A DNA stretch of 64,000 nt, from the sequence record OR805293.1; one strand, written 5' to 3'. Every line of letters begins with the position of its first letter. Within the stretch, counting starts at the first letter, position 1. A model generated the notes under the pieces. The model saw nothing but the letters and a program-made list of their open reading frames with translations, was not told the DNA's origin and did not search any database. Shown here in pieces: positions 1-34,708 of this stretch. A program made the position numbers and the translations under genes.

Positions 1-25
1 TAAAAGAAAGAAATAATTTAGTTTC

Positions 26-85
26 TTTTTCATTATCTTTTTCATTATCTTTTTCATTTTCATTATCTTTTTCATTTTCTTTATC
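26..85. repeat. Ten tandem hexamers WTTWTC (GAWAAW on the minus strand)
   Basis: tttttc attatc tttttc attatc tttttc attttc attatc tttttc attttc tttatc: strict 6-bp periodicity. Confidence 0.9.
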
Positions 86-103
86 TTTTATCATTGCAAA
101 TAC

Positions 104-213
104 AAATAATAATTATTCTTATTTGCATTTAGTGATGTAAATAATTCTTATTTGTAATTGCGATTAATTCTTATTTGCTACAATAGATAGAATAAGAATA
201 ATTCACATTTGCA
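104..213. promoter_or_regulatory. Cluster of four Fur-box-like 10-1-10 palindromes
   Basis: 21-mers at 104 (AAATAATAAT-T-ATTCTTATTT), 133, 156 and 190 (GAATAAGAAT-A-ATTCACATTT), mostly followed by GCA or GTA. Confidence 0.65.
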
Positions 214-499
214 ATGCCGCTAAAAGCGCTGTAAGCGCTGTATGTTGCGTAGTAATGCTAAGCAATGCATTAGTACAGCTACGCGCACAAACGCTGTTAT
301 ATGCGCTTGTAGCGCGTTTTAGGGCCCATGCGCATGCGTACACCTGTAGCTTTACATAGCAAAATGCAGAAAAGACGTCGTCTATTGACGTGCCTGTCTT
401 AATAGAAATATACAATTGTACAATACCTGTGAAATCCTACACACTACAGACATGCAAACAAGCAATGTGCTTGCAAGCATAAAAGTTTTTAAAAAGTAG

Positions 500-528
500 T
501 AGACATTGTGTAGCATCCCTAGTAAGCT
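500..528 (+). promoter_or_regulatory. sigma70-type early promoter
   Basis: TAGACA-17-TAAGCT, upstream of GGAG RBS (551) and ATG 563. Confidence 0.7.
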
Positions 529-562
529 ACACACACATAAACAACACAACGGAGTACAAGCT

Positions 563-1018
563 ATGTCTAATGTAAGCATCCCTGCAGTAACGGTAGAGAA
601 CATCGGCACCCTGCGCATTGTGCGCACCGCTAACAAGGAGGTCGGAAGTGTGCTCGACCTAAAAGTTAACGGGGTAGTAGTAGGGCAAGCTTTCCCGCTC
701 TACAGCACAAAAACCCAGCGTAGCTGGAACGCAAGCATGCACGCTACCGTTAACGGTGTAGAGGTGCAGTTTGCACAGGAAGGCGTGTTCAGTGCAATCC
801 GCATTGCACGGGCGTTCGAGGATGCAGTAAAGCATGCCGTTAGCAACGGCGAGCAAGGGCAACCCCTCCCCGCGCCGGCGGCGCAGTCCGATGCCCCGGC
901 AACGGCAGAAGCGCAAGCAGAAGCCCCGGCGGCGCAGACCGAGGATGCGCCGGAGACCCTGGCAGCCGAAGCTAAGCCCGCCCGCAAAGGCGGCAGCAAA
1001 GGCGGCAGCAAAAAGTAA
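563..1018 (+). CDS. Early hypothetical protein with Ala/Lys/Pro-rich tail; paralog of 7145..7582
   Basis: RBS GGAGT 551-555 favours ATG 563 over 506; shares NGVxVG, TKTQRxW and GVFSAIRIARAxE with 7145..7582; GC-rich codons. Confidence 0.9.
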   Translation: MSNVSIPAVTVENIGTLRIVRTANKEVGSVLDLKVNGVVVGQAFPLYSTKTQRSWNASMHATVNGVEVQFAQEGVFSAIRIARAFEDAVKHAVSNGEQGQPLPAPAAQSDAPATAEAQAEAPAAQTEDAPETLAAEAKPARKGGSKGGSKK

Positions 1019-1031
1019 GCGCTGCTAACAC

Positions 1032-1060
1032 AGGAAAGGGGCAACTGCCCCTTTCCTTTT
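1032..1060 (+). terminator. Rho-independent terminator, cassette type
   Basis: aggaaaggggc-aact-gcccctttcct followed by ttt. Confidence 0.9.
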
Positions 1061-1146
1061 ATGTCCTAGTTGTAAATGCAAATTAATCTTATTTGCATTT
1101 GCACAAGTCATTCTCCTGTTGCATTACTGCTTTAAGATGTTAGTAT
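1037..1146 (+). repeat. 110-bp intergenic cassette, copy 1 (terminator, Fur-like box at 1074-1094, promoter TTGCAT-16-TAGTAT)
   Basis: Direct repeat of 1621..1730 with 4 mismatches. Confidence 0.95.
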
Positions 1147-1172
1147 ATATGTAGCTATACGGAGTAATTGCT

Positions 1173-1324
1173 ATGAAGCGCAAGTACCTAAAGGCACAGT
1201 TCGAGCATGTTAGTGCCAAGCTCGCCTGCAGCGTATGTTCGAAGAACTCGGTTGCAAGCCCGATGCTTGCTCTGCTAGCATGTACGAGGATAAGACGCAC
1301 ATCACATTAGCCTGGAGCAAGTAA
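1173..1324 (+). pseudogene. Small early gene, possibly frameshifted
   Basis: GGAG RBS and ATG 1173; frame 0 stops at 1310 (45 aa); the -1 frame (ARLQRMFEELG...AWSK) runs to TAA 1324, directly abutting ATG 1325. Confidence 0.4.
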
Positions 1325-1615
1325 ATGGATATGTCGATTGTGAACAAGCGCTTCGAGAAAGAACTAGCGCTGTTTAATGTCGAAGTTCTCGGTAAGCGCA
1401 CAGTGAATCATATAACGAAACCGAACATCGAAGTTTCGTTCAAACTAAAGGGTCATACTACTGAAGAAGAGATGACCACTGTTACTCAGCTCGCACGTCC
1501 CATTATGGAGTATGTAAGCGGACGTAGGGTGGTCTGGGCACACACCAGTCTTTGGCGTGCAATGAAAGACGACCTCGAAGTAGCAGTGCTGACAATGAAG
1601 TTATCCAAACAATAA
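1325..1615 (+). CDS. Hypothetical early protein (96 aa)
   Basis: ORF with GGAG at 1314; followed by cassette terminator. Confidence 0.85.
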   Translation: MDMSIVNKRFEKELALFNVEVLGKRTVNHITKPNIEVSFKLKGHTTEEEMTTVTQLARPIMEYVSGRRVVWAHTSLWRAMKDDLEVAVLTMKLSKQ

Positions 1616-1620
1616 GAGAT

Positions 1621-1730
1621 AGGGGCAACTGCCCCTTTCCTTTTATGTCCTAGTTGTAAACGCAAATTAATCTTATTTGCATTTGCACAAGTCAATCTCC
1701 TGTTGCATTACTGCGGTAAGATGTTAGTAT
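1621..1730 (+). repeat. 110-bp intergenic cassette, copy 2 (terminator, Fur-like box at 1658-1678, promoter)
   Basis: Direct repeat of 1037..1146. Confidence 0.95.
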
Positions 1731-1770
1731 GTGTTTAGCAGTAACACATAACTAGCAGGAGCAATAGACA

Positions 1771-2019
1771 ATGGCTAAAGTATTGCATGTTGACAGCATC
1801 GGCAACATCGCCGAAATGTTTACATCTGTAGACCTCGATAGCGCCTTGTTGTACGCAATCAAGCGCTGTGCAATGATGGGCAAGGTTAATGTTGTTGGTC
1901 CCAACGCTCCTGTGTTTGCTATCCACTACGACGCACTGACAGCGTACGACGTGCAGTGGCGCCTCATTCCTCCGGGCTGCGGCGTTACCGTGTACGTCAT
2001 TGCCGAAGACAGCAATTAA
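1771..2019 (+). CDS. Hypothetical early protein (82 aa)
   Basis: RBS AGCAGGAG 1754-1761; directly downstream of cassette promoter. Confidence 0.85.
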   Translation: MAKVLHVDSIGNIAEMFTSVDLDSALLYAIKRCAMMGKVNVVGPNAPVFAIHYDALTAYDVQWRLIPPGCGVTVYVIAEDSN

Positions 2020-2030
2020 GGAGAGACACC

Positions 2031-2333
2031 ATGAATCTCGTTCATTTGTGGATCGACGGGCGTGCTGTGACTGCCCGCAAGGTTGTCAGTAAACACACTG
2101 TCCGCAATCCGAACAGTCCGATCGATATCGAGACTATCGACGTTGTTCGACTGCGTCTGCCCCGCGGTGTGCGTGCTAGCAGTTGGGCACTCCGCAAGGC
2201 AGTGTACCAGCTCATGGAGCAAAGCTGTAGCTGCTCGAGAGACTGTTGTGGACACTGGTTCGGCGGTGCACGCAAGATCTACATTAACGGCAGAGACATC
2301 AGTGTCGTTGCCGGGTACCAGCGCAATTACTAA
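2031..2333 (+). CDS. Hypothetical protein with CSCSxDCCGHWF Cys motif (100 aa)
   Basis: RBS AAGGAG favours ATG 2031 over 1956; ends at terminator. Confidence 0.85.
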   Translation: MNLVHLWIDGRAVTARKVVSKHTVRNPNSPIDIETIDVVRLRLPRGVRASSWALRKAVYQLMEQSCSCSRDCCGHWFGGARKIYINGRDISVVAGYQRNY

Positions 2334-2401
2334 AGGAAAAGGGGCAACTGCCCCTTTCCTTTTATCCATTAATGTGTAAACGCGAATAATTCTTATTTGC
2401 A
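2332..2401 (+). terminator. Cassette terminator followed by Fur-like box (2378-2398)
   Basis: ggggcaactgcccctttccttttat, same core as 1037 and 1621; AAACGCGAAT-A-ATTCTTATTT-GCA. Confidence 0.85.
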
Positions 2402-2482
2402 CAGGTCATTGAGATGCGAATGCAAACAAGAGGCATTCTTGATACGGTCGGGTGATAAGAATTGTTCACAAAAAGAAAAAGC

Positions 2483-2510
2483 TTGCGTTATGCTACACAG
2501 GTGCTAGTAT
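2483..2510 (+). promoter_or_regulatory. sigma70-type early promoter
   Basis: TTGCGT-16-TAGTAT with TGn extended -10. Confidence 0.65.
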
Positions 2511-2552
2511 GTGTATTGCAGTATCTATAAACATTAATAGCAGGATAAGAAA

Positions 2553-2873
2553 ATGGTTGACTTTAAAGGTTTTAACTGGGACGCACTAGTCCCGGAGGGC
2601 AACGTTTCCACAGTTTCCATTAAAAATCACTACGAGGAACTCCTACAAAGTTTTGTTGACAACGGCATAGACTATGTGTTAGTCCGGCTGTCCCAGGAAC
2701 TGCCGCACTACGAGGATTCAGACTATCCCTGCTACAAATTAGTTGACAAGTATGCAGGATGGATAGTAGGCTGGGACTACTACGGATTTGTTGTGGAACG
2801 CATGGACACGCACCTTTTCTTTGACAACTGCACTGCAAAGGGTGTAATGGACTTCCTGGAAGCCAACGGCTAG
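2553..2873 (+). CDS. Small acidic early protein (106 aa)
   Basis: Own promoter, RBS (GCAGGA) and terminator; about 18 D/E versus 7 K/R. Confidence 0.85.
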   Translation: MVDFKGFNWDALVPEGNVSTVSIKNHYEELLQSFVDNGIDYVLVRLSQELPHYEDSDYPCYKLVDKYAGWIVGWDYYGFVVERMDTHLFFDNCTAKGVMDFLEANG

Positions 2874-2875
2874 CA

Positions 2876-2908
2876 CAAAAAGGAAGGGGCGCAAGCCCTT
2901 TTCTTTTG
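2876..2908 (+). terminator. Rho-independent terminator
   Basis: caaaaaggaaggggc-gcaa-gcccttttcttttg. Confidence 0.8.
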
Positions 2909-2921
2909 TCTGCAATTTCTG

Positions 2922-3168
2922 TGCAAATAAGAACTATTACAGTTGTGGTAAAAGCACAATGCAAATAAGACGCATTCTTGATTAGGCCTGATAATAAGTT
3001 CTTATTAACAACAAAGAAACTGAATAAGAATAATTCTGAAAAAATAACCCTGCAGCGTAACACAAAGAACATGCAATTTGCAAGCCCTTTTTAATACACA
3101 TTTGTTAAGATTAGTTCTTATTTGTAATGATATTATTCCTGCCACGCAAATAAGAATTAATCTTAGAA
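2922..3168. promoter_or_regulatory. Non-coding cluster of five Fur-box-like sites
   Basis: 21-mers at 2925, 2963, 3022, 3103 and 3148. Confidence 0.6.
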
Positions 3169-3203
3169 CAAATATTCACTTGATTTTTCTCCCAATATAG
3201 TGT

Positions 3204-3620
3204 ATGTCTATATTAGATAAGATTAAGTCTTGTTTGCTTGTTACATTTTACATGTTGCAATGCCAAGGCAATGACAATATTATATGTACAGCAACACAAA
3301 ACAGGAGTTATAACGTGTCAGCAGAATTGAAGCGGTTGTTGGAGATTTTTCCAACCTTTAAATCATTCATTTATGCTAAAGGGGCATATGGCATTGATGT
3401 TTGGAAGGCTACGGGTAGTGTTACTTTGGAACAGGTATCCAATGCTGTTAATGCAGGTAATGCTGAATGGCAATGTAAGGGTGATCCAACTTGCAGCCTG
3501 GAACAAAACAGCATGTATATTTTCATTACTATTCAGGAACCAGACTACACAGGAATGGTTGATATTGATGTTTGTGTAAAGATTACTAACGGTAATGAAG
3601 TAAGTTATCAAATAGCATAA
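3204..3620 (+). CDS. Hypothetical protein (138 aa; start uncertain)
   Basis: ORF ending at a cassette terminator. Confidence 0.75.
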   Translation: MSILDKIKSCLLVTFYMLQCQGNDNIICTATQNRSYNVSAELKRLLEIFPTFKSFIYAKGAYGIDVWKATGSVTLEQVSNAVNAGNAEWQCKGDPTCSLEQNSMYIFITIQEPDYTGMVDIDVCVKITNGNEVSYQIA

Positions 3621-3621
3621 T

Positions 3622-3655
3622 AAAGGAAAGGGGATTAATTCCCCTTTCCTTTTAT
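3622..3655 (+). terminator. Cassette-type terminator
   Basis: aaaggaaagggattaattcccctttcctttt. Confidence 0.8.
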
Positions 3656-3670
3656 GTATAATATACTTAT

Positions 3671-3720
3671 AAATAAGAATTAATTTTATTTAATTAAAAT
3701 TAGAATAATTCTTATTTGCA
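3671..3720. promoter_or_regulatory. Two tandem Fur-box-like sites
   Basis: AAATAAGAAT-T-AATTTTATTT (3671) and AAATTAGAAT-A-ATTCTTATTT-GCA (3697). Confidence 0.65.
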
Positions 3721-3838
3721 CGATCCCGCGCTTATAACACAAGTATGTTACAAAAGCAAGAATAAAATTAACTTGACACCTATATGTAGAATATAGCACA
3801 ATGTGTTTATAAATTATATTACTACAGGAGTGTTAACC

Positions 3839-4210
3839 ATGTTCAAATGCAAATTGTTTGTAATAGATCCTATTTATAACAACCTTTGCTACACTCAACA
3901 AATATGGCTCGAAAGTGACGTAAATGTGTGTAGTCAAATAAAGCGTATTATTTCTAACGCAGAATTGGCATGCGCAAATAGGATAGTAAATAATCCTCAT
4001 AGTCCACTATGCGTTAAATCGGCAGCATTAAAAATGGTTATGGACGGGCGCATTGACATCGAACTCAAAGATGTCAATAGTTACGTTGATCAATATAAAG
4101 ACATTCTCCCTAGCACAAATATTTTGGGTGTTTTTAAACCGACGTTTTTATCTAACTGGAAAGAAGAGTGTGAACTTTATTTCCTTACTTGGGTTGAAAA
4201 AGACAATTAA
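3839..4210 (+). CDS. Hypothetical protein (123 aa)
   Basis: RBS CAGGAG favours ATG 3839. Confidence 0.8.
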   Translation: MFKCKLFVIDPIYNNLCYTQQIWLESDVNVCSQIKRIISNAELACANRIVNNPHSPLCVKSAALKMVMDGRIDIELKDVNSYVDQYKDILPSTNILGVFKPTFLSNWKEECELYFLTWVEKDN

Positions 4211-4221
4211 TATAATATAAT

Positions 4222-4509
4222 ATGGAAGATGATTTAAAAAATATTGTTTCGAAGACTATCTTATCTAATAAAATTAAGATAGTCTCTTTACGTACTGTAG
4301 TAAAAACTCAGTATAAAAGAGTAGACTTCCATTATAAGATAGAATGTGAAAATAGTTCTACAAAACGTAATTTGGTGCTTGCCCGTATATGCAAACCATT
4401 AGAACACACATTAGGTTCAAAACTTGTTTATGTAGATGTTGTGCCTATCAAGTTTAAGAAAGATGAAATGCCATCTACTATTCTATCGGTAAGTGTAATG
4501 ACTAGTTGA
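4222..4509 (+). CDS. Hypothetical basic protein (95 aa)
   Basis: ORF directly after 3839..4210. Confidence 0.7.
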   Translation: MEDDLKNIVSKTILSNKIKIVSLRTVVKTQYKRVDFHYKIECENSSTKRNLVLARICKPLEHTLGSKLVYVDVVPIKFKKDEMPSTILSVSVMTS

Positions 4510-4531
4510 TATTTGGATTTGATTTTTGGAA

Positions 4532-4630
4532 ATATAATAGTAATTCTTATTTGCAATTATAATAAATTCTTGTTTACTTTTAAAATAAAAGCAAATTCTA
4601 GTTGCATAGCTAGCGGCACTGTGCTAGTAT
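4532..4630 (+). promoter_or_regulatory. Two Fur-like boxes (4532, 4555) upstream of a sigma70 promoter
   Basis: ATATAATAGT-A-ATTCTTATTT-GCA; TTGCAT(4602)-17-TAGTAT(4625) with TGn. Confidence 0.7.
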
Positions 4631-4659
4631 ATTAAAAAATAAAGACAGGAGTGTTATAC

Positions 4660-4842
4660 ATGCAAACCAAAGCAACTGAGTTGGCAGTAGGTGATGTTGT
4701 TTTCTACAACGGCATGAAAATGACTATCCAGAAAATTTCTAAAGGTCGGTGTGCAATAGATATTACACTAGTAAATACTTTGGCTAAACTCACATCTTAT
4801 GTGACAGTCGACTACGACGAAGAATTTGAAGAAGTATTATAA
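4660..4842 (+). CDS. Small protein, possible SH3/KOW-like beta-barrel (60 aa)
   Basis: RBS CAGGAG favours ATG 4660; ATELAVGDVV pattern. Confidence 0.8.
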   Translation: MQTKATELAVGDVVFYNGMKMTIQKISKGRCAIDITLVNTLAKLTSYVTVDYDEEFEEVL

Positions 4843-4860
4843 TGCAGAAATTATAGTCAT

Positions 4861-4887
4861 AAGAAAAGGGGCATTGCCCCTTTTCTT
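4861..4887. terminator. Bidirectional terminator
   Basis: aagaaaaggggc-att-gccccttttctt between convergent genes. Confidence 0.9.
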
Positions 4888-5125
4888 ATAGTCCCAACAA
4901 ATGCTTGCCACTTTTGACTTGCATCATACGTACTTTCTTTTTGCGCATTTGCGTTCTTACGTTCAGGCTGTTGGGACCTTTGAAGCTATACAGTATTTCA
5001 GTAGTCCCGTCTTCATAGTTGCGTACCACATTTGCAACAATTTGACTACCTTCCTGGAACGCTTCGATAAACACGCAGTAATTGAAATTTTCCTTGTTAG
5101 CGTTATGTGCGCGTAGTTGCATCAT
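4886..5125 (-). CDS. Hypothetical early protein (79 aa)
   Basis: Minus-strand RBS GCAGGAG; promoter TTGCAT-16-TATACT at 5191-5164. Confidence 0.85.
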   Translation of the reverse strand: MMQLRAHNANKENFNYCVFIEAFQEGSQIVANVVRNYEDGTTEILYSFKGPNSLNVRTQMRKKKVRMMQVKSGKHLLGL

Positions 5126-5269
5126 TTTCTGTTACTCCTGCGTTGTTTTGCTTTGTTATGTGTAGTATACGCTATGTGTGTACTAATGCAAGAATTTTCT
5201 TCCATTTTCTTTCAAATAAAATGTTATTAGCATCTATTTTGTTATAACATTTTCTACTACTTCATGTTT

Positions 5270-5296
5270 TGCAAATAAGAATTATTCGCATTTGCA
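5270..5296. promoter_or_regulatory. Best Fur-box-like palindrome (13-1-13), between divergent promoters
   Basis: TGCAAATAAGAAT-T-ATTCGCATTTGCA; 2 mismatches between arms. Confidence 0.7.
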
Positions 5297-5479
5297 TTCC
5301 TACCTATCTGCCTAAAATTTAGGCAGCCTGGGTGATTGTCTCCCCCGCCCCCATTACTGGTCTCTGTATAAAGATAATAGCATATTTGTATCTGCATGCA
5401 AGTATTTTTTGTAGAATTTTCCTCTTGACATTCCTTGCTATAGGCTACATTATGCACACACAAAGCAGGAGATACCATT

Positions 5480-5860
5480 ATGGCACTCATAGCATTAGTA
5501 GCAACTGCATATGACAAAGAAGGCGATAAGTTCGACTATGTTCGATATCTTAAAGCTCATATCAATTTTGTTTCTGCTCAAGATCAACTGAAAGAATGGA
5601 TCAAAAACAAAATTGATGCAAGTATAGCAGAAGTTAAAATCGGATTACGTGCAGAAATCGAAGTATTGGCCTATTTGGGAAACTATATAAGCCATAGTCA
5701 ACGGATTATTAGTCCCGCCGGGATCATCATGTACATTGTCCTTGATGAGAAGTATGTTAATGAACTTCACGGTCAAATTTCTAATGCAATCGATTGTGAA
5801 GAAAAGAAACATGTAATAAAGAAAGAAGAAAACGTCACTTATATTGATTTTAAAAAATAA
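5480..5860 (+). CDS. Hypothetical protein (126 aa)
   Basis: RBS AGCAGGAG; TTGACA at 5425. Confidence 0.85.
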   Translation: MALIALVATAYDKEGDKFDYVRYLKAHINFVSAQDQLKEWIKNKIDASIAEVKIGLRAEIEVLAYLGNYISHSQRIISPAGIIMYIVLDEKYVNELHGQISNAIDCEEKKHVIKKEENVTYIDFKK

Positions 5861-5861
5861 C

Positions 5862-5890
5862 TTGCATTAGCTGTAATGTATATGTATTAT
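5862..5890 (+). promoter_or_regulatory. sigma70 promoter with no RBS-bearing ORF downstream
   Basis: TTGCAT-17-TATTAT. Confidence 0.7.
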
Positions 5891-5896
5891 GTACTC

Positions 5897-6053
5897 AAGT
5901 TTGCAGCAAGACATATTAATTTGTTTTGCTGTTAGTTGTAACTCCTGCTACCAAGTATGTGTTGAGCTAATGCTCCTGACTTGGTTCTTGGTACACTGGT
6001 TTGGGTGTACCGTTCTTGAGCTGCAAAGGGCTTGCCCGGAGCAGCTTTTTTTT
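5897..6053 (+). ncRNA. Candidate small RNA (~155 nt)
   Basis: Own promoter; hairpins gcaagaca/tgttttgc, ccaagt/acttgg, ggtacac/gtgtacc; terminator agctgc-aaa-ggg(cttg)ccc-gga-gcagct-T7; no RBS-ORF. Confidence 0.55.
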
Positions 6054-6133
6054 GACCAATATTATTCATTTGACAAAAAATAATAATTAAAAATATAATA
6101 GCTTAGTGTATAACTTCCTATATTAGGCTAATT

Positions 6134-6505
6134 ATGAAATTTGTTATTGCTGCTATTGCATTGTCTTTGTCCACACTAGTTTCTGCAGAATCTATTTCTG
6201 AAGTTAAGATAACTAAAGAAACATGCCTTACACTTCTGGAATTATCTAAGATTCATGTTGATATAGTAGTAAATGAACATATGAATGCAATACAAATTGC
6301 ATCTCATATGGATATTGTATCTAATTTATATAAGAATGATAATAGTAAATGGCTTGCGTTCTTGCAGGCTCAAGCAAATATTTCAAAATTAATTGATAAC
6401 GTATATGAGTTTTCATCTACCGAAGAAAGAAAGATTATTCCTCTAGCCATATTTAACGGTTGTATGGAAAGAGTTGGTAATACTTTTGAAATATATAAGA
6501 AATAA
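6134..6505 (+). CDS. Putative exported (periplasmic) protein (123 aa)
   Basis: Sec-type signal MKFVIAAIALSLSTLVSA; two Cys; promoter TTGACA-18-TATAAT at 6070-6099. Confidence 0.85.
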   Translation: MKFVIAAIALSLSTLVSAESISEVKITKETCLTLLELSKIHVDIVVNEHMNAIQIASHMDIVSNLYKNDNSKWLAFLQAQANISKLIDNVYEFSSTEERKIIPLAIFNGCMERVGNTFEIYKK

Positions 6506-6506
6506 T

Positions 6507-6812
6507 ATGTATGTATATGTAGTCCACGGAATAGTCAATACAGGCGTTGAGACTAATATTTGTGATATAGAACGTTACGTTACAGTTAACGACTTCCATG
6601 CTGTAGCAAAGTTTCTTAATTTTAAAGGATATATAGCAGCAAACACAGAATTATATATACGATTAATTGTTTCTGGATTGAATATTAAAAAGAACATATT
6701 AGAAATGAATTTATCCAAAAAAGAATATGTAGTATCAGGCTTTAAAGTTACATCAACTGATATAAATGAAGAATATTACCTGTGTAGAAGGATATTTAAG
6801 TTACATGAATGA
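6507..6812 (+). CDS. Hypothetical protein (101 aa)
   Basis: ATG 1 nt after the upstream stop. Confidence 0.75.
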   Translation: MYVYVVHGIVNTGVETNICDIERYVTVNDFHAVAKFLNFKGYIAANTELYIRLIVSGLNIKKNILEMNLSKKEYVVSGFKVTSTDINEEYYLCRRIFKLHE

Positions 6813-6930
6813 ATTTATATTAAAATCCCTTTTATTAACTTCAGTTGTCAGTGCTGGCATACTACTGTTATTCAGTATTATTTCATTGTTAATGTTTGGC
6901 TTAGCACCGATAGTTCCATTCCTTATTTAA
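6805..6930 (+). CDS. Small hydrophobic membrane peptide (41 aa)
   Basis: MNEFILKSLLLTSVVSAGILLLFSIISLLMFGLAPIVPFLI; 8-nt overlap with upstream gene; below the ORF-track cutoff. Confidence 0.65.
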   Translation: MNEFILKSLLLTSVVSAGILLLFSIISLLMFGLAPIVPFLI

Positions 6931-6951
6931 TTTTAATTATTTGCAAGCAAA

Positions 6952-6975
6952 TGCAAATGCGAATAATTCTTATTA
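6952..6975. promoter_or_regulatory. Fur-box-like site
   Basis: TGC-AAATGCGAAT-A-ATTCTTATTA. Confidence 0.6.
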
Positions 6976-7144
6976 TCCAGCAGGCCACCGTACCTAATCT
7001 TCGTTAGATAAAATCTATTAGAATCTACAAAGTCCATTAAAACGTTCAATTGTACATGGTGGCCAGATCTGCATATACTACACACATGAAGCAAGCAAAC
7101 AGCGCTTCATAAACAAACCCAAATACAGCTAGGAGTTCCAAATC

Positions 7145-7582
7145 ATGTCCAAAGCAACCGTTACCGTCGAGCAATCCGCAATCAAACTGGTTCGCCGCAA
7201 CCTGGAAGGGCACCGGCAAGCCCTGCTGCTGAACGGCGTCGAAGTAGGCAGCAGCGAAGCGTTCTACAAGACCAAAACCCAGCGCACCTGGTCGGCGAAG
7301 ATCGACGCCAACATCAACGGCAAGGACATCGTCCTCGAACAGAAAGGCGTGTTCAGCGCGATCCGGATCGCCCGGGCAATGGAACAAGCAATCCTGTTCA
7401 TCCTGACCGACGGCAAAGAAGGCGCCGAGATGCCGGCCAGCACGCTGAGCAAGGAAGAGCAAACCCACAACCTGGTCAAGGCAGTAGTCCAGGTCGCCGA
7501 CCACGCAGTTCAGTCCGGCGACGCTGCCCCGGCGAAGAAAGGCAGTTCGAAGAAGCGCAAAGAAGCCCAGCCGGAAGCATAA
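7145..7582 (+). CDS. Early hypothetical protein; paralog of 563..1018
   Basis: Promoter TTGTAC-18-TATACT at 7050-7079; RBS AGGAG; strongly G/C-ending codons; shared motifs with 563..1018. Confidence 0.9.
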   Translation: MSKATVTVEQSAIKLVRRNLEGHRQALLLNGVEVGSSEAFYKTKTQRTWSAKIDANINGKDIVLEQKGVFSAIRIARAMEQAILFILTDGKEGAEMPASTLSKEEQTHNLVKAVVQVADHAVQSGDAAPAKKGSSKKRKEAQPEA

Positions 7583-7595
7583 TCCGGACTACACC

Positions 7596-7621
7596 GAGAA
7601 AGCACCGAAAGGTGCTTTCTC
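7596..7621 (+). terminator. Terminator hairpin
   Basis: gagaaagcacc-gaaa-ggtgctttctc. Confidence 0.85.
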
Positions 7622-7630
7622 TATGACTGT

Positions 7631-7710
7631 TAATAGCAAATATTCTTATTTGCATCTAATCTGATATAATAATAACTCTTATTTACAAATCATACTGAAT
7701 ACTGTATTTT
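7631..7710 (+). promoter_or_regulatory. Two Fur-like boxes; the second overlaps the -35 of a sigma70 promoter
   Basis: 21-mers at 7631 and 7664; TTTACA(7682)-17-TATTTT(7705). Confidence 0.55.
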
Positions 7711-7738
7711 ACACATTAAACATTGTAGGTAATATAAA

Positions 7739-8227
7739 TTGAATATATTTGTGACTGACACAAATCCTTATGTATGTGCCAAACATCATTGTGATATTCA
7801 TCTAAGAAAGATGATAGTAGAAACAGCACAATTGTTAAGCACTACTCATTATATAATAAACGGATATACTCCTGCATATAAACCTACTCATAAAAATCAC
7901 CCATGTGCCGTTTGGATTAGAGAAAGTTCAAATAACTATAAATGGACTTATGAACTTCTTACAAGTCTTATAAATGAATTCGAATATAGATTTGACAAAC
8001 AACATGCAACTAAAATGCACCTTTCGTCATTAAAAACTATACCAAAACTCCCTAATATAGAAAGAACAGAGTTTGTCTTAGTTATGCCAGACGAATTTAA
8101 AACAGGTAATGTAACACATTCATATCAGTTATATTTAAATAACAAATTTAAAGAATGGGCATCGAGATCTAACAGACCCATTTATGCTACATATACAAAG
8201 ACACCTAAACCATATTTTATTAGTTGA
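7739..8227 (+). CDS. Pyrimidine-dimer DNA glycosylase / endonuclease V (DenV)-related protein
   Basis: NIF...HCDxHxxKMIVETAQLLST...YKPTHxNHPCxxWxRESxxNYxW pattern; TTG start. Confidence 0.8.
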   Translation: MNIFVTDTNPYVCAKHHCDIHLRKMIVETAQLLSTTHYIINGYTPAYKPTHKNHPCAVWIRESSNNYKWTYELLTSLINEFEYRFDKQHATKMHLSSLKTIPKLPNIERTEFVLVMPDEFKTGNVTHSYQLYLNNKFKEWASRSNRPIYATYTKTPKPYFIS

Positions 8228-8299
8228 AAAATAATAAAAATGATTGACACGTACATAAGATCATATTATGCTGTATAAAACAGCAAGGAGTAGATATAC

Positions 8300-8533
8300 A
8301 TGTACCGCAAACTGAATACAAATCCACGCCCAATGCCAAAAACAAAGGCAATTCCAACTAAATTTGTCATTCAGTACACTGCACGGAATAAAGCAACAGA
8401 AAGTTTGTTCAAAAAAAGAACTATTACATTACATGCGTTTGGACGTCTCGATGCACAAACACTCCTATCAAAACATATCCGAAAAAATAATTTGGAATTA
8501 GGTGTAATTATTGATTTCGGTGAAACAGTTTAG
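8300..8533 (+). CDS. Small basic early protein (77 aa)
   Basis: Promoter TTGACA-17-TATGCT at 8244-8272; RBS AAGGAG. Confidence 0.85.
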   Translation: MYRKLNTNPRPMPKTKAIPTKFVIQYTARNKATESLFKKRTITLHAFGRLDAQTLLSKHIRKNNLELGVIIDFGETV

Positions 8534-8542
8534 TTAGTGACT

Positions 8543-8658
8543 AAAGAAAGGGGCATTGCCCCTTTCTTTTTATTAAGTCAATTGCAAATGCAAATACAAA
8601 TTATTCTTATTTGCACAGATCAGACCTTGTTGTATTCTCCATTACGTGGTGCTACACT
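8543..8658 (+). promoter_or_regulatory. Cassette: terminator (8543-8572), Fur-like box (8592-8612), promoter
   Basis: aaagaaaggggc-att-gcccctttcttt; TGC-AAATACAAAT-T-ATTCTTATTT-GCA; TTGTAT-17-TACACT. Confidence 0.8.
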
Positions 8659-8697
8659 GTAAACAGTTGCACAAAACCATAAGCAGGAGTGTTAAAA

Positions 8698-8994
8698 ATG
8701 AACCAAGTGAATAACTCCGAAGAGATGGCGTACATCCGCAATCTGCTTCAGTCTGAAGATGCAGTAAAATACTTTGCTCGCAAAGTCAACGACCTCATCG
8801 GCAAAGAGGCATTCGAGCGGCTCCTTAACGGCTTGTCCTACGAGGAGAATGTTGCACTGAACCTGATGATCGAAAACAATCTCGCCAGCTTGCACAGCGA
8901 CGGGTTTGTCGGTATCAAGTTCGATCTCAAACTAGAAGACGTGCGTGCAGACGTCGACTTCACCGACGAAGGCTTCGAGCTGGAGGAAGAGTGA
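8698..8994 (+). CDS. Small, highly acidic early protein (98 aa)
   Basis: RBS AGCAGGAG favours ATG 8698; about 22 D/E versus 9 K/R; ends DVDFTDEGFELEEE. Confidence 0.9.
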   Translation: MNQVNNSEEMAYIRNLLQSEDAVKYFARKVNDLIGKEAFERLLNGLSYEENVALNLMIENNLASLHSDGFVGIKFDLKLEDVRADVDFTDEGFELEEE

Positions 8995-9130: not shown

Positions 9131-9454
9131 ATGATTGAAGTAATTAAATGCATTATATGTAATGAATCACCCCGTCCGGGCGCATTTGCAGCATTTATTA
9201 CTCAAATGCGTCAAGTAGTAAAACCTCATGCAACTATAACTAGTTGGAATATTCTGCCCGGCATTAATGATGATCCAACTAGTTATATTCATGCATTCAG
9301 TATAAAATCAAAAACAGCATACGATATTAATCAAGCAATTACCTTATTACTAATGTCATTATATAATGCTAGTGAATATAAGACTAGCTACATACCTACT
9401 TCGTTTAAAGACTATGAATCTACAATAAAACATTTATCTAAGATCAAACAATAA
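9131..9454 (+). CDS. Hypothetical protein (107 aa)
   Basis: ORF after promoter TTGTAT-16-TATTAT at 9049-9076. Confidence 0.75.
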   Translation: MIEVIKCIICNESPRPGAFAAFITQMRQVVKPHATITSWNILPGINDDPTSYIHAFSIKSKTAYDINQAITLLLMSLYNASEYKTSYIPTSFKDYESTIKHLSKIKQ

Positions 9455-9518
9455 CCAGTTGCATATTTACAAATATACATGTATGCTAATATGTATACAC
9501 AATCATGAGTACATTATC

Positions 9519-9674
9519 ATGACAAAAGAAATTGCTTTTACTGAAGGATTAAAAGCAGGCACTCAAATAAAAGAAGGCAAAGCTATCCTAACTGACTTCT
9601 TTCGATATTTCAATTCCTTACCAACTAATATGAGAACTTCTTTTATCATCGGTATCAAAACCGGTAGAAACTAA
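9519..9674 (+). CDS. Hypothetical protein (51 aa)
   Basis: Promoter TTGCAT-17-TATGCT at 9459-9487; GAG RBS; ATG 9519. Confidence 0.7.
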   Translation: MTKEIAFTEGLKAGTQIKEGKAILTDFFRYFNSLPTNMRTSFIIGIKTGRN

Positions 9675-9761
9675 TAAGCATATTAATTTTCATATTTTGG
9701 TAGACAAAGGTACTCACTGGATGCATACTGTACACATACAGAACATACGGAGTACAAAGGG

Positions 9762-10031
9762 ATGGACGCGCGCAGCCTGCTTAGCCTTATCGAAGACCTC
9801 CCTATAGCTGTCTTCGGCAGCACAATGGATATTGTTCATCGAGTCAATTTTGAAGCTCTGGACAATGCCGCCCACACCGACGGGGTAAAAGTCCACGAAG
9901 ACGGAACCAACCGTTATACAGACGCTTTTGTCGATTGTTGGCTCCGCAGCGTCGAAACAGTTTTGGCCTGTTGCGATTTTGTGACCGAGGATGCCGCTAA
10001 GTGGTATATCGAGCACGGTGTCAAGTTTTGA
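9762..10031 (+). CDS. Small acidic early protein (89 aa)
   Basis: Promoter TAGACA-17-CATACT at 9701-9729; leader ...acggagtaca like that of gene 563. Confidence 0.85.
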   Translation: MDARSLLSLIEDLPIAVFGSTMDIVHRVNFEALDNAAHTDGVKVHEDGTNRYTDAFVDCWLRSVETVLACCDFVTEDAAKWYIEHGVKF

Positions 10032-14666: not shown

Positions 14667-15041
14667 ATGATATTTGTTTTTGGTAGTAATGAAGCGGGTC
14701 GACATGGCGCTGGCGCAGCAAAATTTGCACTACAGCGTAAAGGTGCAATCTACGGTATCGGTGTAGGTCATCATGGACAAAGTTATGCAATTCCTACTAA
14801 AGATCATAACATAATTACACTACCGTATGCTGATATAGAAAAATATGTTGAGCAGTTTTTAGAATATGCGAAAAATAATCCACAATTGCAATTTCAGGTA
14901 ACCCGAATTGGTTGTGGTCTAGCAGGTTTCACTGATAACGAAATAGCTCCGCTGTTTGTTACTGCATCAGATAATTGCTATTTCGATAGCGCCTGGTCGC
15001 CTTATCTTCCTAGCAATTTTAAATTTTGGGGAAGTTTATGA
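14667..15041 (+). CDS. Macro-domain-like phage protein (A1S_2505-type family)
   Basis: IFVFGSNxAGxHGAGAA...GQSYAIPT...VTxIGCGLAG motifs. Confidence 0.8.
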   Translation: MIFVFGSNEAGRHGAGAAKFALQRKGAIYGIGVGHHGQSYAIPTKDHNIITLPYADIEKYVEQFLEYAKNNPQLQFQVTRIGCGLAGFTDNEIAPLFVTASDNCYFDSAWSPYLPSNFKFWGSL

Positions 15042-15253
15042 ATATAATAGAGAAAATACAAGACTATAATAGTGTTTTTGATAGAATAACAGTCTCGTAT
15101 TTATTGCAATTAATAACAGGGAGTGAAAAGTTAACTAACTTTGACTTTATCAATATAAAGATAGTAACATATAAAACTAGTGTAACTAGTAAACCTAGTG
15201 CAACATTAGAATATAGAACATGCAGTTTTCCTATAAAAATAGGATTAGTATAG
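15038..15253 (+). CDS. AT-rich mini-ORF (71 aa)
   Basis: ATGA overlap with 14667..15041. Confidence 0.6.
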   Translation: MNIIEKIQDYNSVFDRITVSYLLQLITGSEKLTNFDFINIKIVTYKTSVTSKPSATLEYRTCSFPIKIGLV

Positions 15254-15468
15254 TGAATAAACAAGCAGAATATATTCACGCATACATTAAGGTATTAAGC
15301 GTCTGTTCTATTAATAAAATTATTAATAAGCGTGTGAACCATTTTAGTATATACATAACAGAAGTTATTCATGATTTTGATGGAAAATATTTAATTGTGA
15401 GAGCTAAATTTTATATTGTAGGTATTTACGGTTGTTATAGCAAGCCGGTTATATACAGATGCATATAG
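15253..15468 (+). CDS. AT-rich mini-ORF (71 aa, GTG start)
   Basis: TAGTG overlap with the upstream stop. Confidence 0.55.
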   Translation: MNKQAEYIHAYIKVLSVCSINKIINKRVNHFSIYITEVIHDFDGKYLIVRAKFYIVGIYGCYSKPVIYRCI

Positions 15469-15653
15469 ATATATTAGATTATTCGGCACGTTTCGGTAGA
15501 AGGTCTAAAGCCGTATATATGTTAATTTACCTTGCGTTTTTAACGGTTAATACTAAACATATAAAAATAAAAATAGATAAATCGTCTAGAGTTTTCTTTT
15601 CTATGATAGAAAACAACAATTTAAGATATAGTATAGGTATAGTATGTCAATAA
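15459..15653 (+). CDS. AT-rich mini-ORF (64 aa)
   Basis: 10-nt overlaps on both sides. Confidence 0.55.
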   Translation: MHIDILDYSARFGRRSKAVYMLIYLAFLTVNTKHIKIKIDKSSRVFFSMIENNNLRYSIGIVCQ

Positions 15654-20622: not shown

Positions 20623-22368
20623 TTAACCTACCCTAATCCATACGTATGCACATTGCCACGGAGATTGGTTATTATGTTTTCCGTCGCCGCCGACAGAAGA
20701 AGTTAGAGGAGCTGTGGTAACGCTCTGGAATCCGTAACCGTCTTCGACCCTAGCAGATTGACCGCCGACTGAACCGAATCTACCCGATTGCGAAACGTTA
20801 TTTCCGAAACCTTGTATATGCTGATGCGCTGGCATCTCTGCTACAGTAAGTTTATGGAAATAAGTTCCTCCTGTTGATCCGGCAGCATATCCACCCGAAT
20901 CTCCATTTGCATCAGTAGTAGATCCGTTCCCGACTATAGATCTGCCCTGTGCATACGGATTCCAGACCCCGAATCCTAAATAAGTTGCTGGGTTTGCCGA
21001 ATTAGTTGCGTTAATGTATACAGAACCTATAGGATATACTAATTCTCTAGTAGCTGCAATGGCAGTTAAAATTTTCTGATCTACTTGGTCTTGGGTATAA
21101 ACGGTAGGAAGATTGCCAGTATGCCATATTCTTTGACCGTTTATATATAGTGCGCCGTCGTTTACGCCATCTGTATGCAGTCGAACATCGTAATCAGTAG
21201 AAGAGTTCGTGGCATGGTGAAAATCTAAATACCTAGCTATTTCTGTAACACCAGATGTACTAACAACAGGAATCTTGTTAGCCATATTTCCAGGAACACC
21301 AGGTGCTATAACATCGTGTGACGCTGCTGTGCCTAATCCAACTACAGTTGTGTTCATTGTAACGTTTGTAGTACCGTCTAATACTACTGAACCTAAAACA
21401 TTTCCAGTTAGTGTTAATGTTCTGCCAAACGTCCATTTATCTGCAGAAGCTGCTCTGGTTGCATTAGTCGCACTTGATGCATTACCTACGAAATTTACAG
21501 AATACATGTTTCTATAGCGCCGAGTAGTAGAACCTAAGTCATACGTATTATCTATTACAGGCATCAAATGAGAATTTAAACCTTGATTTGTGCCAGTTCC
21601 TAGTGTTAATAACGTCGTATTTACATCTTGGCCGAAGAATCTTGTTACTCTATATGAAGTACCACCTATAATCCATGTGCCCCTACAGAATAAATCGTTA
21701 TTAGGTCCGTTTTCTAATGCTATAACAGAAGAACCATTAGTAAAAGTTATACCACCAGAATTAATCCATGCTTTCTTTGTATATAAATTATCCCATTGTT
21801 TTGCAGACGAACCCAAACTAGATGATGTTATAAACTGACAAGGATTCGGCATAGTCGATTGGGTTTCGGGTAATATGTCGCCTTGAACTGAAGTATTTCC
21901 TACAACTGTAAGAGCAGTTCTGTTAGAACTAGATGTACATTTTCTTAAAGTTGCTTCTGTTCCGAAAAAGCCTACTGCATAGATATTTTTAAATCTAAGG
22001 GTAGGAGACCCTATATTAATTGTATTATCAACCTTTGGCAATAGATCTTGTATTAATGCTCCGCCAATAGGAGTCCACATTTCGTTAGATCTATCTGCAC
22101 TAGTGTTATCGTTGGGAGATAGAGGGTCTGCTCCTTTCCATACTTTAAGTATTTCCTGCTGGGTATCATACCACAGTTGGCCCTTAATGGCTCCACGAGG
22201 CGGAATTGTATTGGCAAAATTTTCTAAATGCCTAATTGTACTCTGTGCTATTTCTCCGCCATACGGTGATATGTCTTTGCCTAGTAATGGCAAAGTATAA
22301 TTCTCTAATATCGTTTGGTCTGCAACAGTAATAGGGGTGCCGTTACTTTTGGAAATATTATATGACAT
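20623..22368 (-). CDS. Baseplate wedge / tail-pin protein (gp10-like C-terminus)
   Basis: YPIGSVYINA...NPATYLGFGVW...GG...HKLTxAEMPAHQH...HNN.SPW..AYVWIR. Confidence 0.75.
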   Translation of the reverse strand: MSYNISKSNGTPITVADQTILENYTLPLLGKDISPYGGEIAQSTIRHLENFANTIPPRGAIKGQLWYDTQQEILKVWKGADPLSPNDNTSADRSNEMWTPIGGALIQDLLPKVDNTINIGSPTLRFKNIYAVGFFGTEATLRKCTSSSNRTALTVVGNTSVQGDILPETQSTMPNPCQFITSSSLGSSAKQWDNLYTKKAWINSGGITFTNGSSVIALENGPNNDLFCRGTWIIGGTSYRVTRFFGQDVNTTLLTLGTGTNQGLNSHLMPVIDNTYDLGSTTRRYRNMYSVNFVGNASSATNATRAASADKWTFGRTLTLTGNVLGSVVLDGTTNVTMNTTVVGLGTAASHDVIAPGVPGNMANKIPVVSTSGVTEIARYLDFHHATNSSTDYDVRLHTDGVNDGALYINGQRIWHTGNLPTVYTQDQVDQKILTAIAATRELVYPIGSVYINATNSANPATYLGFGVWNPYAQGRSIVGNGSTTDANGDSGGYAAGSTGGTYFHKLTVAEMPAHQHIQGFGNNVSQSGRFGSVGGQSARVEDGYGFQSVTTAPLTSSVGGDGKHNNQSPWQCAYVWIRVG

Positions 22369-22371
22369 AAA

Positions 22372-22977
22372 TTACCCCATTTGCACTCTAACAGTATATT
22401 GTATTTGTAATGCTCTATTAGATGATTTTTGTATAGGATGGAATATTACATGAGTAATCATTATTGCTTCACTTTGATCTAAATTTCCGGCTATACTGGG
22501 CGGACCTACATATAACGCAATTTCATCGAATACAGAACTATCTTTATTATCTTCTGCAAAACTGGGAGCTCTGTCTATAATTTGTTGTTGTAGTCCTGCT
22601 TCATCATATGCAAGAGTAGTGGTTACTTTTAAATCTGAAAAGTTTGTACTTCCTAAAATAACTTCTATTTTATTTTGAAGTGTATTATCTATTTCTTTTT
22701 TAAATGTTTCGTTATATAACGAATCGTCGGGATTGCGTATAATAGAAACATTGGGTTCCCTATAAATTATTTCACCCTCAGCAGTCACTCGAGTACCGCC
22801 ATTGCCGAAAGCCATATATCTTACGTGCCCGTTATCTTGTCCAGCCAATGCAGATACTATAGCAGCAGCCAAATTACCGAAATGAATTGCATTCTTTTTG
22901 CTAAGAAGTATTTCACCCGTGTCTTTATCTACAATAGTAAGATGCCCAATAGCACGGATAGTTCCACTATCTTGCAT
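22372..22977 (-). CDS. Baseplate protein (gp8-position)
   Basis: Conserved jumbo-phage pattern KKNAIHFGN...MAFGNGG...FDEIALY...THVIFHPIQKSSNR..QI.YTVR. Confidence 0.65.
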   Translation of the reverse strand: MQDSGTIRAIGHLTIVDKDTGEILLSKKNAIHFGNLAAAIVSALAGQDNGHVRYMAFGNGGTRVTAEGEIIYREPNVSIIRNPDDSLYNETFKKEIDNTLQNKIEVILGSTNFSDLKVTTTLAYDEAGLQQQIIDRAPSFAEDNKDSSVFDEIALYVGPPSIAGNLDQSEAIMITHVIFHPIQKSSNRALQIQYTVRVQMG

Positions 22978-34702: not shown

Positions 34703-34708
34703 TTTTAG

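Follow-up and report, generated by a model that had tools for sequence, protein, structure and literature searches.

Control of a phage promoter by a metal-dependent regulator of the host is known from stx1 under Fur and from diphtheria tox under DtxR, and in both cases a temperate phage carries a single toxin gene, which is repressed through a box lying on the promoter. A long terminal repeat also gathers numerous small early genes, with strong promoters and terminators of the host type, in the terminal redundancy of SPO1 and the pre-early region of T5, as in the phage described here, and we know of no palindromic operator of the host metalloregulator type shared within those host-takeover modules. 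In bacteria, Fur boxes upstream of the promoter activate or anti-repress ftnA of E. coli, where several sites displace H-NS, as well as hilD of Salmonella and ompT of V. cholerae (PMC3788343). In T4-type phages, PeSL cassettes have been described as repeated terminator/early-promoter units between small variable early genes (PMC2839356, PMC4122927). Here we analysed a stretch of 64,000 nt from sequence record OR805293.1 (hereafter the window, to which positions refer unless stated otherwise), at the start of which a 27-bp dyad recurs upstream of early genes. Our analysis showed that this dyad belongs, by its sequence, to the Fur-family class of operators, and its candidate role lies in the early programme of a lytic jumbo phage, in contrast to the single genes stx1 and tox.

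The first 9 kb of the window correspond to positions 186,001–195,000 of Pseudomonas phage Deifobo with 100% identity, and are 96–97% identical to PA5oct and nine other PA5oct-like phage records (Wroclawvirus where the taxonomy was read). In PA5oct, the counterpart of the window start is 27,365–35,471, within the 39,080-bp terminal repeat. The phage DNA has about 33% GC and the host 66% GC, which makes it a natural target for MvaT/MvaU. Previous studies have indicated that PA5oct needs the host RNA polymerase and is blocked by rifampicin, that its early transcription uses almost only the Watson strand, and that its terminal-repeat genes gp34–gp105 are highly transcribed, rifampicin-sensitive early genes (PMC7318152). 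The same paper describes 32 sigma-70-type promoters but not the 27-bp dyad motif, and the MIJ3 paper likewise contains no description of it. The bacterial precedents at ftnA, hilD and ompT (PMC3788343) are similar in that their Fur-type sites, in some cases in tandem, are found at distances of 60 to several hundred bp upstream of the start, in AT-rich DNA prone to silencing. They differ in being single host genes with proven Fur binding, whereas the phage has about 30 candidate sites over its whole early region.

The dyad follows the pattern TGCAAAT-xxx-AAT n ATT-xxx-ATTTGCA, in which a centre base has two hexamers on either side. Sites were scanned for with the consensus TGCAAATAAGAATnATTCTTATTTGCA at a threshold of at least 18/26 matches and are given as 27-mers; the 21-mers listed in the preliminary description of this DNA begin 3 nt inside them. 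In the whole 288-kb Deifobo genome, which was read in six pieces, 39 dyads (13-1-13) reached this threshold. Twenty-nine of them fall in one 28-kb stretch, and the remainder is at the level of chance. All 17 copies of the exact 11-mer TCTTATTTGCA in the genome lie in this stretch (166,805–194,605), in agreement with the earlier impression that the motif is missing from the core genes. Within the window it has 11 matches, all before position 8615, where 0.07 were expected from shuffles, and the earlier count of 11 in about 8.7 kb was thus reproduced. All 21 sites of the preliminary description were found in the sequence, including three weak ones (2925 and 3103 with 17/26, 3022 with less than 16/26), and a dyad at 3212 is additional to that list. 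The roughly 20 operator-like sites proposed there do exist, but they are part of a larger field of 29 dyads, whose start lies about 19.2 kb ahead of window position 1. The corresponding field of PA5oct has 30 sites and extends from 8,669 to 35,460 of the terminal repeat. The sites had been said to be exclusively intergenic. This is true of 25 out of 29 PA5oct sites (30% expected, p = 6.5e-10; many cassettes are duplicates, so the sites are not independent), while the other four overlap tiny, doubtful open reading frames (ORFs).

Symmetry of the motif, described earlier as a palindrome with one centre base, was found at this spacing alone, since the partner half matches at 8.8/13 positions with a spacer of 1 and at about 4/13 with all other spacers. 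In the AATnATT core, both A at −3 and T at +3 are present in 29/29 sites. Information falls to background beyond ±13, and the flanks are unconserved across all sites. Most dyads are asymmetric, with one near-invariant half (A-TCTTATTTGCA) and one weaker half that comes in two flavours, AAATAAGAAT or AAAYGCRAAT; the strong half is promoter-proximal in 22 of the 29 sites. We regard these dyads as putative protein-binding operators of the Fur-family type.

A search of 185,579 bacterial genomes with the pattern TGCAAAYRMRAATNATTYKYRTTTGCA found exact phage-type 27-mers as 12 single sites in 12 genomes. Ten of the 12 adjoin metal-uptake or fur-family genes, namely TonB receptor/HemS, FeoA, an iron-type binding protein, a PepSY_TM operon, ZnuA (four sites) and FUR (two sites). 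The Zwartia site TGCAAATAAGAATCATTCTTGTTTGCA, at the TonB-dependent receptor and HemS, matches the phage consensus at 25/26 positions, and the PepSY_TM case is a porin/FMN-binding/PepSY_TM operon of a Pseudomonadales genome. The sites were also scored with known Fur boxes; these yardsticks came from Xanthomonas, Acinetobacter and E. coli, and none of them is a matrix of P. aeruginosa, the host. The Xanthomonas Fur consensus AATGAgAATcATTctCATT, which is experimentally supported (PMC1790865), is essentially the one quoted in the preliminary description. Against this consensus, which is not the host's, the phage sites average 13.7/18 with 15/29 at or above 14/18, and the five Xanthomonas boxes given in the text of that paper score 13–16/18; at least 14/18 is reached at 16 positions in the field, compared with 0.85 in shuffles. 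With a matrix built from 21 A. baumannii Fur boxes (PMC3055841), the phage sites have a median of 12.7 bits and 14/29 score at or above the weakest real box. The best match is the dyad at 101 with 22.6 bits, and 14 positions in the field score at or above the weakest training box, compared with 0.2 in shuffles. By these two yardsticks, neither of them the host's, the sites are far above an AT-matched background, contrary to the scoring outcome that the preliminary description had named as a refutation. On account of the bacterial neighbours and the Xanthomonas and A. baumannii scores, the dyads are, by sequence, members of the Fur-family operator class.

Gram-negative Fur boxes (the Xanthomonas consensus, the 25-bp palindrome of A. 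baumannii, and the 7-1-7 and hexamer models) share with the phage dyad the single centre base, the AATnATT core, the ATTT outer arms and the hexamer F-F-x-R-R layout; about half of the phage sites score within the range of real boxes, and identical 27-mers stand at bacterial metal-uptake genes. The phage differs in using TAAGAAT and YGCRAAT and never the canonical heptamer, in its more conserved TGCA ends, and in placing the sites upstream of the promoter, on DNA with a probably modified G. Other known sites were compared by eye, and none of the sigma-54 −24/−12 element, the T4 MotA box, IHF, Fis, Vfr/CRP, TyrR, PurR/LacI-type sites, the ARG box, the gamma-proteobacterial Zur box or the DnaA box fits in both sequence and spacing. 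Separately, perfect 27-bp palindromes of the type TGCAAACGCAAATAATTTGCGTTTGCA were seen in Clostridia-type and Brevinematales genomes (L129, L130, L131, L135, L136, L137 and L139), directly upstream of znuA-like and FUR-family regulator genes, and this type may be a lineage-specific Zur/Fur-family box.

In a census of 104 half-sites from Deifobo and four relatives, the half-sites used were TAAGAAT/TAAGATT (type A) and YGCRAAT (type B). Structures of Fur with DNA have shown that the only hydrogen-bonded base contact is that of Arg57 to a conserved G, the rest being shape readout and thymine contacts (PMC4506495). At the Arg57-read position, 67/104 phage half-sites have A, as the preliminary description had noticed, and 32/104 have G, always in TGC, CGC or TGT. 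PA5oct DNA is resistant to EcoRI, XbaI and other enzymes (bioRxiv 10.1101/2025.03.31.646159), and the phage encodes genes for 7-deazaguanine synthesis. This resistance together with these genes points to a modified G in GA and/or GG context. Where the Fur-read G is present, it is followed by C in 30/32 cases and by A in none, which hints that an unmodified G is wanted here: in GC context it would stay unmodified and readable by a host protein.

Most dyads sit in a cassette, which as a rule consists of an intrinsic terminator, a spacer of 10–15 nt, the dyad, and then 11–21 nt to a predicted promoter (e.g. TTGCAT-16/17-TGnTAGTAT); all promoter positions given here are predicted. The cassettes are homologous throughout and share terminator, dyad, ATTTGCAC, TTGCAT...TAGTAT and leader. 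The proximal dyad is centred 28–37 bp upstream of the −35, i.e. at about −63 to −73, so that the sites sit upstream of this element and not on it, as previously stated. At predicted promoters that have a proximal dyad, the −35 hexamer is weak (TTGCAT, TTGTGT, TTGAAT and similar), and the TTGACA promoters at 3773, 5425, 6070 and 8244, a small sample, have no proximal dyad. A promoter hidden in the dyad or array itself was also considered, and no conserved partner element was found at up to 17 nt on either side. In addition, tight arrays of 3–4 dyads occur, spaced by 23–47 bp in Deifobo and by 23–29 bp in metagenomic relatives. They lie 276–467 nt upstream of genes of one GC-rich paralog family, and pyrimidine-rich repeats precede them. 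An array followed by a paralog gene was found twice in Deifobo and also in the relatives L119, L125, L126 and L127, the last three of which have CT-rich stretches ahead of their arrays as well.

Conservation of the dyads was examined in close and in metagenomic relatives. Across three close relatives, variation affects 2.0% of the positions of the strong 11-mers as against 5.1% in other intergenic DNA (p = 0.059); for the weak half the value is 5.9%, which equals the neutral rate. Metagenomic relatives were found by a profile search with the paralog family. Of these, L125 aligns at about 80% identity across one third of its length and L126 at 77% identity across 0.5 kb, and L127 has no nucleotide similarity. 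All three have kept the dyads, which are again confined to intergenic DNA, and in each of them an array of four sites stands ahead of a paralog gene. In L119, the cluster that corresponds to 2922–3238 precedes the paralog gene; its first three elements are unchanged, and 11 other positions of that intergenic region differ. The dyads are therefore retained in related phages, namely PA5oct and the metagenomic L119 and L125–L127, which are 0–80% alignable and have all their dyads in intergenic DNA, a point that the preliminary description had left to be looked at. The more distant relative L120 has the paralog and not the motif. A scan of IMG/VR with AATWAWTCTTATTTGCA gave 108 contigs, and the 80 that were listed have a single match each, consistent with chance, with no other array among the matches listed.

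The differences among close relatives are located at the cassettes. PA5oct lacks 1147–1617, which indicates a crossover between two cassette copies, and Callisto lacks 2402–3109, with the crossover inside TTCTTATTTG, the strong half of the dyad 2375–2401. In PAC2, a 460-bp cassette is inserted at the spot 3668..3720, with dyad copies on its flanks. At 8627–8993, Deifobo has an extra promoter and an extra gene (8698–8994), both absent from PA5oct, PAC2 and Callisto, and the break starts 11 bp after the last dyad. The cassette is a composite of terminator and early sigma-70 promoter, repeated between variable early genes, and the indel junctions of PA5oct, Callisto and PAC2 fall in the cassettes or in the dyad itself. 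Junctions within the cassettes are the behaviour described for the PeSL cassettes of T4-type phages, in which the indel junctions of close relatives also lie within the units (PMC2839356, PMC4122927). The abstracts of these two papers, however, name no 27-bp dyad operator, and the phage dyad also occurs alone and in arrays. Judging from these junctions, the repeated cassettes also serve as crossover points for early-gene gain and loss.

We then considered which phage protein could bind the dyads. Among 59 terminal-repeat ORFs, no DNA-binding Pfam domain was found at E ≤ 0.05–0.1, ORFans being beyond the reach of this search. The genome annotation lists a late sigma factor and no further product related to transcription, and its single "DNA binding protein" entry is a DenV-like glycosylase gene. 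The paralog family that follows the arrays has genes of about 60% GC in a phage of 33% GC. Its members are the two window genes listed in Table 1 and L003 27303–28007 (= PA5oct 9167–9871), each built of a beta-rich N-terminal domain of 85 aa, followed by an acidic/proline linker and then by a basic tail (KKGxxKK). In an AlphaFold2 (AF2) model of the 145-aa paralog, residues 1–88 are confident (six strands and a helix) and the tail is disordered. The family matches no Pfam family, and Foldseek searches of this model against PDB and BFVD matched only its own family; distant homologues were found only in metagenomic phage contigs. One paralog, PA5oct EST35_0038, has been found in virions by mass spectrometry. 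By association, the paralog family is the sole candidate for a phage-encoded binder.

Our preferred reading, held tentatively, is that host Fur binds the upstream dyads and acts as a co-activator or anti-silencer; we infer both the binder and the sign of its effect. The dyads are built into the terminator–dyad–promoter cassettes of the early genes, and the host RNA polymerase transcribes these genes from the terminal repeat. Iron-loaded host Fur would be the most likely binder, because it is abundant and present when the DNA enters, and because no gene for a Fur-like or any other DNA-binding protein could be recognised in the phage. Bound at about −63 to −73, or in the upstream arrays, Fur would not block the polymerase. 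It would instead exclude the MvaT/MvaU silencers from the AT-rich DNA, or help the polymerase at promoters with a weak −35, and early expression would then depend on the iron state of the host. Fur is ranked first because the upstream sites cannot occlude the promoter, because ftnA, hilD and ompT offer precedents, and because early promoters must fire before any phage protein exists. A more far-reaching version, which we consider doubtful as a whole, is that this lytic jumbo phage uses iron-loaded host Fur as both sensor and anti-silencer for its whole early programme, with operators tuned to G-modified DNA. The Fur-read G would then be kept only in the unmodifiable GC context and otherwise give way to the TAAGAAT half, infection would start efficiently only in iron-replete cells, and the same cassettes would drive modular exchange of early genes.

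Several observations weigh against Fur as the binder. The canonical heptamer TGATAAT/TGAGAAT is found in 0/104 phage half-sites, as against 43% of A. baumannii half-sites. In the dominant half, TAAGAAT, A takes the place of the G read by Arg57, and the G of AAGAAT is in GA context and probably carries the modification in virion DNA. Conservation is strong for C at +4 and GC at +11/+12, at positions where A. baumannii Fur boxes vary. With the A. baumannii matrix, most sites lie in the lower half of the real-box score range and only 1/29 reaches the training median. The distance from dyad to −35 varies between 11 and 21 nt without helical phasing, and the phasing of a class-I activator was rejected on this ground. 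The gene that follows an array is always a member of one phage family, a pattern that resembles autoregulation by a factor of the phage. The E. coli rule calls for at least 14/19 matches to GATAATGATAATCATTATC (cited in PMC6922518); the phage sites average 11.7/19 as against 10.1 in AT-matched DNA, with 2/29 at 14/19 or more, and genome-wide there are 33 such positions as against 41 in shuffles, i.e. no enrichment. A verdict of "not Fur-like" from the E. coli 19-mer and 7-1-7 scoring was nevertheless set aside, because the Xanthomonas consensus itself scores only 10/19 in the same register and because the bacterial scan revealed the class of the pattern. The Fur-box likeness of the preliminary description thus stands by the Xanthomonas consensus and the A. 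baumannii matrix, but not by the E. coli 19-mer or the canonical heptamer.

A phage-encoded binder, already named as a real alternative in the preliminary description, remains nearly as likely as Fur in view of the missing heptamers and of the arrays before paralog genes. The dyads would then be operators of a dedicated phage factor, early-encoded or delivered with the virion, which switches the early units on or off together, and the likeness to Fur boxes would be incidental. Such a factor would leave what is seen here, a departure from the Fur consensus that is conserved and rich in information at +4 and +11/+12, and the tight 3–4-dyad arrays recur before the paralog gene in Deifobo and four relatives. 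EST35_0038 in PA5oct virions would satisfy the delivery, the two half-site flavours could suit heterodimers of paralogs on hetero-dyads, and a modified G favours a co-evolved reader. The absence of any other array among the 80 of 108 IMG/VR contigs listed also fits. Yet the searches revealed neither a DNA-binding domain nor a known fold for the paralogs, none of the 59 terminal-repeat ORFs offered such a domain, and L120 has the paralog without the motif. The relatives were found through the paralog, so this association is partly one of ascertainment. An early-encoded protein would be absent at time zero, when the promoters must fire, and the identity of the operator class, flanks included, with bacterial metal-regulon operators would have to be a coincidence.

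The same match to bacterial operators is left unexplained if the dyad has no dedicated binder and is a piece of a mobile cassette kept by duplication and gene conversion, serving as a homology patch or a generic upstream promoter element. This we find improbable, even though whole cassettes are homologous from terminator to leader, the weak half evolves at the neutral rate, and the indel junctions of PA5oct, Callisto and PAC2 lie in cassettes or dyad as described for PeSLs. The information of the dyad ends sharply at ±13 without conserved flanks, the exact spacer-1 symmetry is retained, and the dyad is also found outside the common cassette, in arrays and divergent contexts, and persists where the surrounding DNA is unalignable (L126, L127). 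The titration of host Fur, proposed as one option in the preliminary description, is the least supported of the explanations and very unlikely. In that case the sites would soak up Fur as the genome replicates and derepress iron uptake and other Fur-controlled genes. The sites are Fur-like, and there are about 30 of them per repeat copy and about 60 per virion genome. E. coli contains a few thousand Fur molecules per cell, a number that the sites would approach with about a hundred replicated genomes. A decoy, however, should have optimal boxes, whereas no half-site is canonical and most sites score low; nor would it need a fixed place, whereas the sites belong to terminator–promoter cassettes and keep a set distance from the −35. 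The burst of PA5oct is just 30–40 (PMC7318152). RNA sequencing (RNA-seq) of PA5oct infection in iron-replete LB highlighted NAD, psl, nap and Pf1 genes of the host (PMC7318152); these published highlights name no pyoverdine, pyochelin or heme-uptake genes and thus no derepression of the iron regulon, and that paper does not contain the word "iron".

Table 1. Dyads and associated features at the start of the window (positions in the window unless L003 is given).
Feature	Position	Strand	Remarks
Pyrimidine-rich 12-bp tandem repeat (TCTTTTTCATTA x about 6)	22..95	+	Found with Tandem Repeats Finder (TRF); directly upstream of first array
Analogous repeat (CTTATTCATTTC x3.8)	L003 26742-26786		Precedes upstream array
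Four-dyad tandem array	101..213	+	101-127, 130-156, 153-179, 187-213; 350 nt upstream of paralog gene at 563
GC-rich paralog family gene	563..1018	+	Beta-rich N-terminal domain; basic tail KGGSKGGSKK
Cassette	1030..1172	+	Terminator 1032-1057, dyad 1071-1097, predicted promoter TTGCAT-16-TGtTAGTAT at 1119-1146
Second cassette copy	1617..1770	+	Terminator 1621-1636, dyad 1655-1681, same promoter as 1119-1146
Terminator with dyad and weak dyad	2338..2447	+	Terminator 2338-2357, dyad 2375-2401, weak dyad 2421-2447
Loose dyad cluster	2922..3238		2922-2948 (-), 2960-2986 (-), 3019-3045 (core only), 3100-3126 (+), 3145-3171 (-), 3212-3238 (+)
Two adjacent dyads	3668..3720		3668-3694 (-), 3694-3720 (+)
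Two overlapping dyads	4529..4578	+	4529-4555, 4552-4578; upstream of predicted promoter TTGCAT-17-TAGTAT
Near-perfect dyad, 24/26	5270..5296	-	Halves TGCAAATAAGAAT / ATTCGCATTTGCA; divergent intergenic region; Fur-matrix score 19.6 bits
Dyad upstream of second paralog gene of the window	6952..6978	-	
Second paralog gene of the window	7145..7582	+	145 aa
Two dyads	7628..7687	+	7628-7654, 7661-7687; after terminator 7600, upstream of DenV-like gene
Last dyad of field, 24/26	8589..8615	+	After terminator 8548-8565; relatives diverge 11 bp downstream

Some further observations concern the annotation of this region. A run of minus-strand ORFs in the Deifobo record, Deiofobo_0365–0376 (window 200–2900; record 186,203–189,072), overlaps plus-strand genes that have promoters, ribosome-binding sites and terminators, and PA5oct, which was curated with RNA-seq, annotates the plus strand; these minus-strand calls look spurious. 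The gene at 7739–8227, annotated as "DNA binding protein", encodes a DenV-like glycosylase for pyrimidine dimers in DNA; its match to Pfam Pyr_excise (E = 6.7e-4) stays below the curated cut-off. A "CRISPR" annotation at L003 17975–18340 (Deifobo 157,975–158,340) covers tandem repeats of 39–68 bp. By offset from the match between the window and PA5oct, it lies within a few hundred bp of the start of the terminal repeat, and a feature of the genome end is the more likely identity, rather than a CRISPR array.

In the PA5oct terminal repeat, three early ORFs (L118 15728–16195, 17508–18107 and 23200–23406) have weak to moderate Pfam matches, which are to a dual-specificity phosphatase (E = 9e-6), Ead/Ea22 (E = 2e-7, above the cut-off) and a ribosome modulation factor (E = 2.5e-5, just below the cut-off). 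Two highly expressed non-coding RNAs of the repeat, ncRNA001 (8263–8498) and ncRNA002 (21951–22401), each end just upstream of dyads: a triple array begins 171 nt past the former and one single dyad stands 31 nt past the latter. In the distant relative L120, a comparable non-coding stretch of 1 kb precedes the paralog gene. By its number alone, PA5oct EST35_0052 (15016–15573) may be gp52, which a 2025 preprint reports as an END nuclease inhibitor (anti-END1), but gp numbers and locus tags of PA5oct are offset elsewhere. If the two are the same, at least one gene of proven counter-defence function lies in the early region that bears the motif.

If a host metalloregulator binds the dyads, this would be the first lytic jumbo phage known to us that wires its whole early region to the iron sensor of its host; to our knowledge, such control has otherwise been described only for individual toxin genes carried by temperate phages. 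It would give a handle on how AT-rich phage DNA escapes silencing by MvaT/MvaU in a GC-rich host, on how host physiology gates the start of infection, which is relevant to the PA5oct/Paride group in phage-therapy work, and on the co-evolution of DNA hypermodification and protein recognition. Should a phage protein bind them instead, the dyads would define a new early regulator together with its regulon. Either way, this is an element that the PA5oct and MIJ3 papers do not report.

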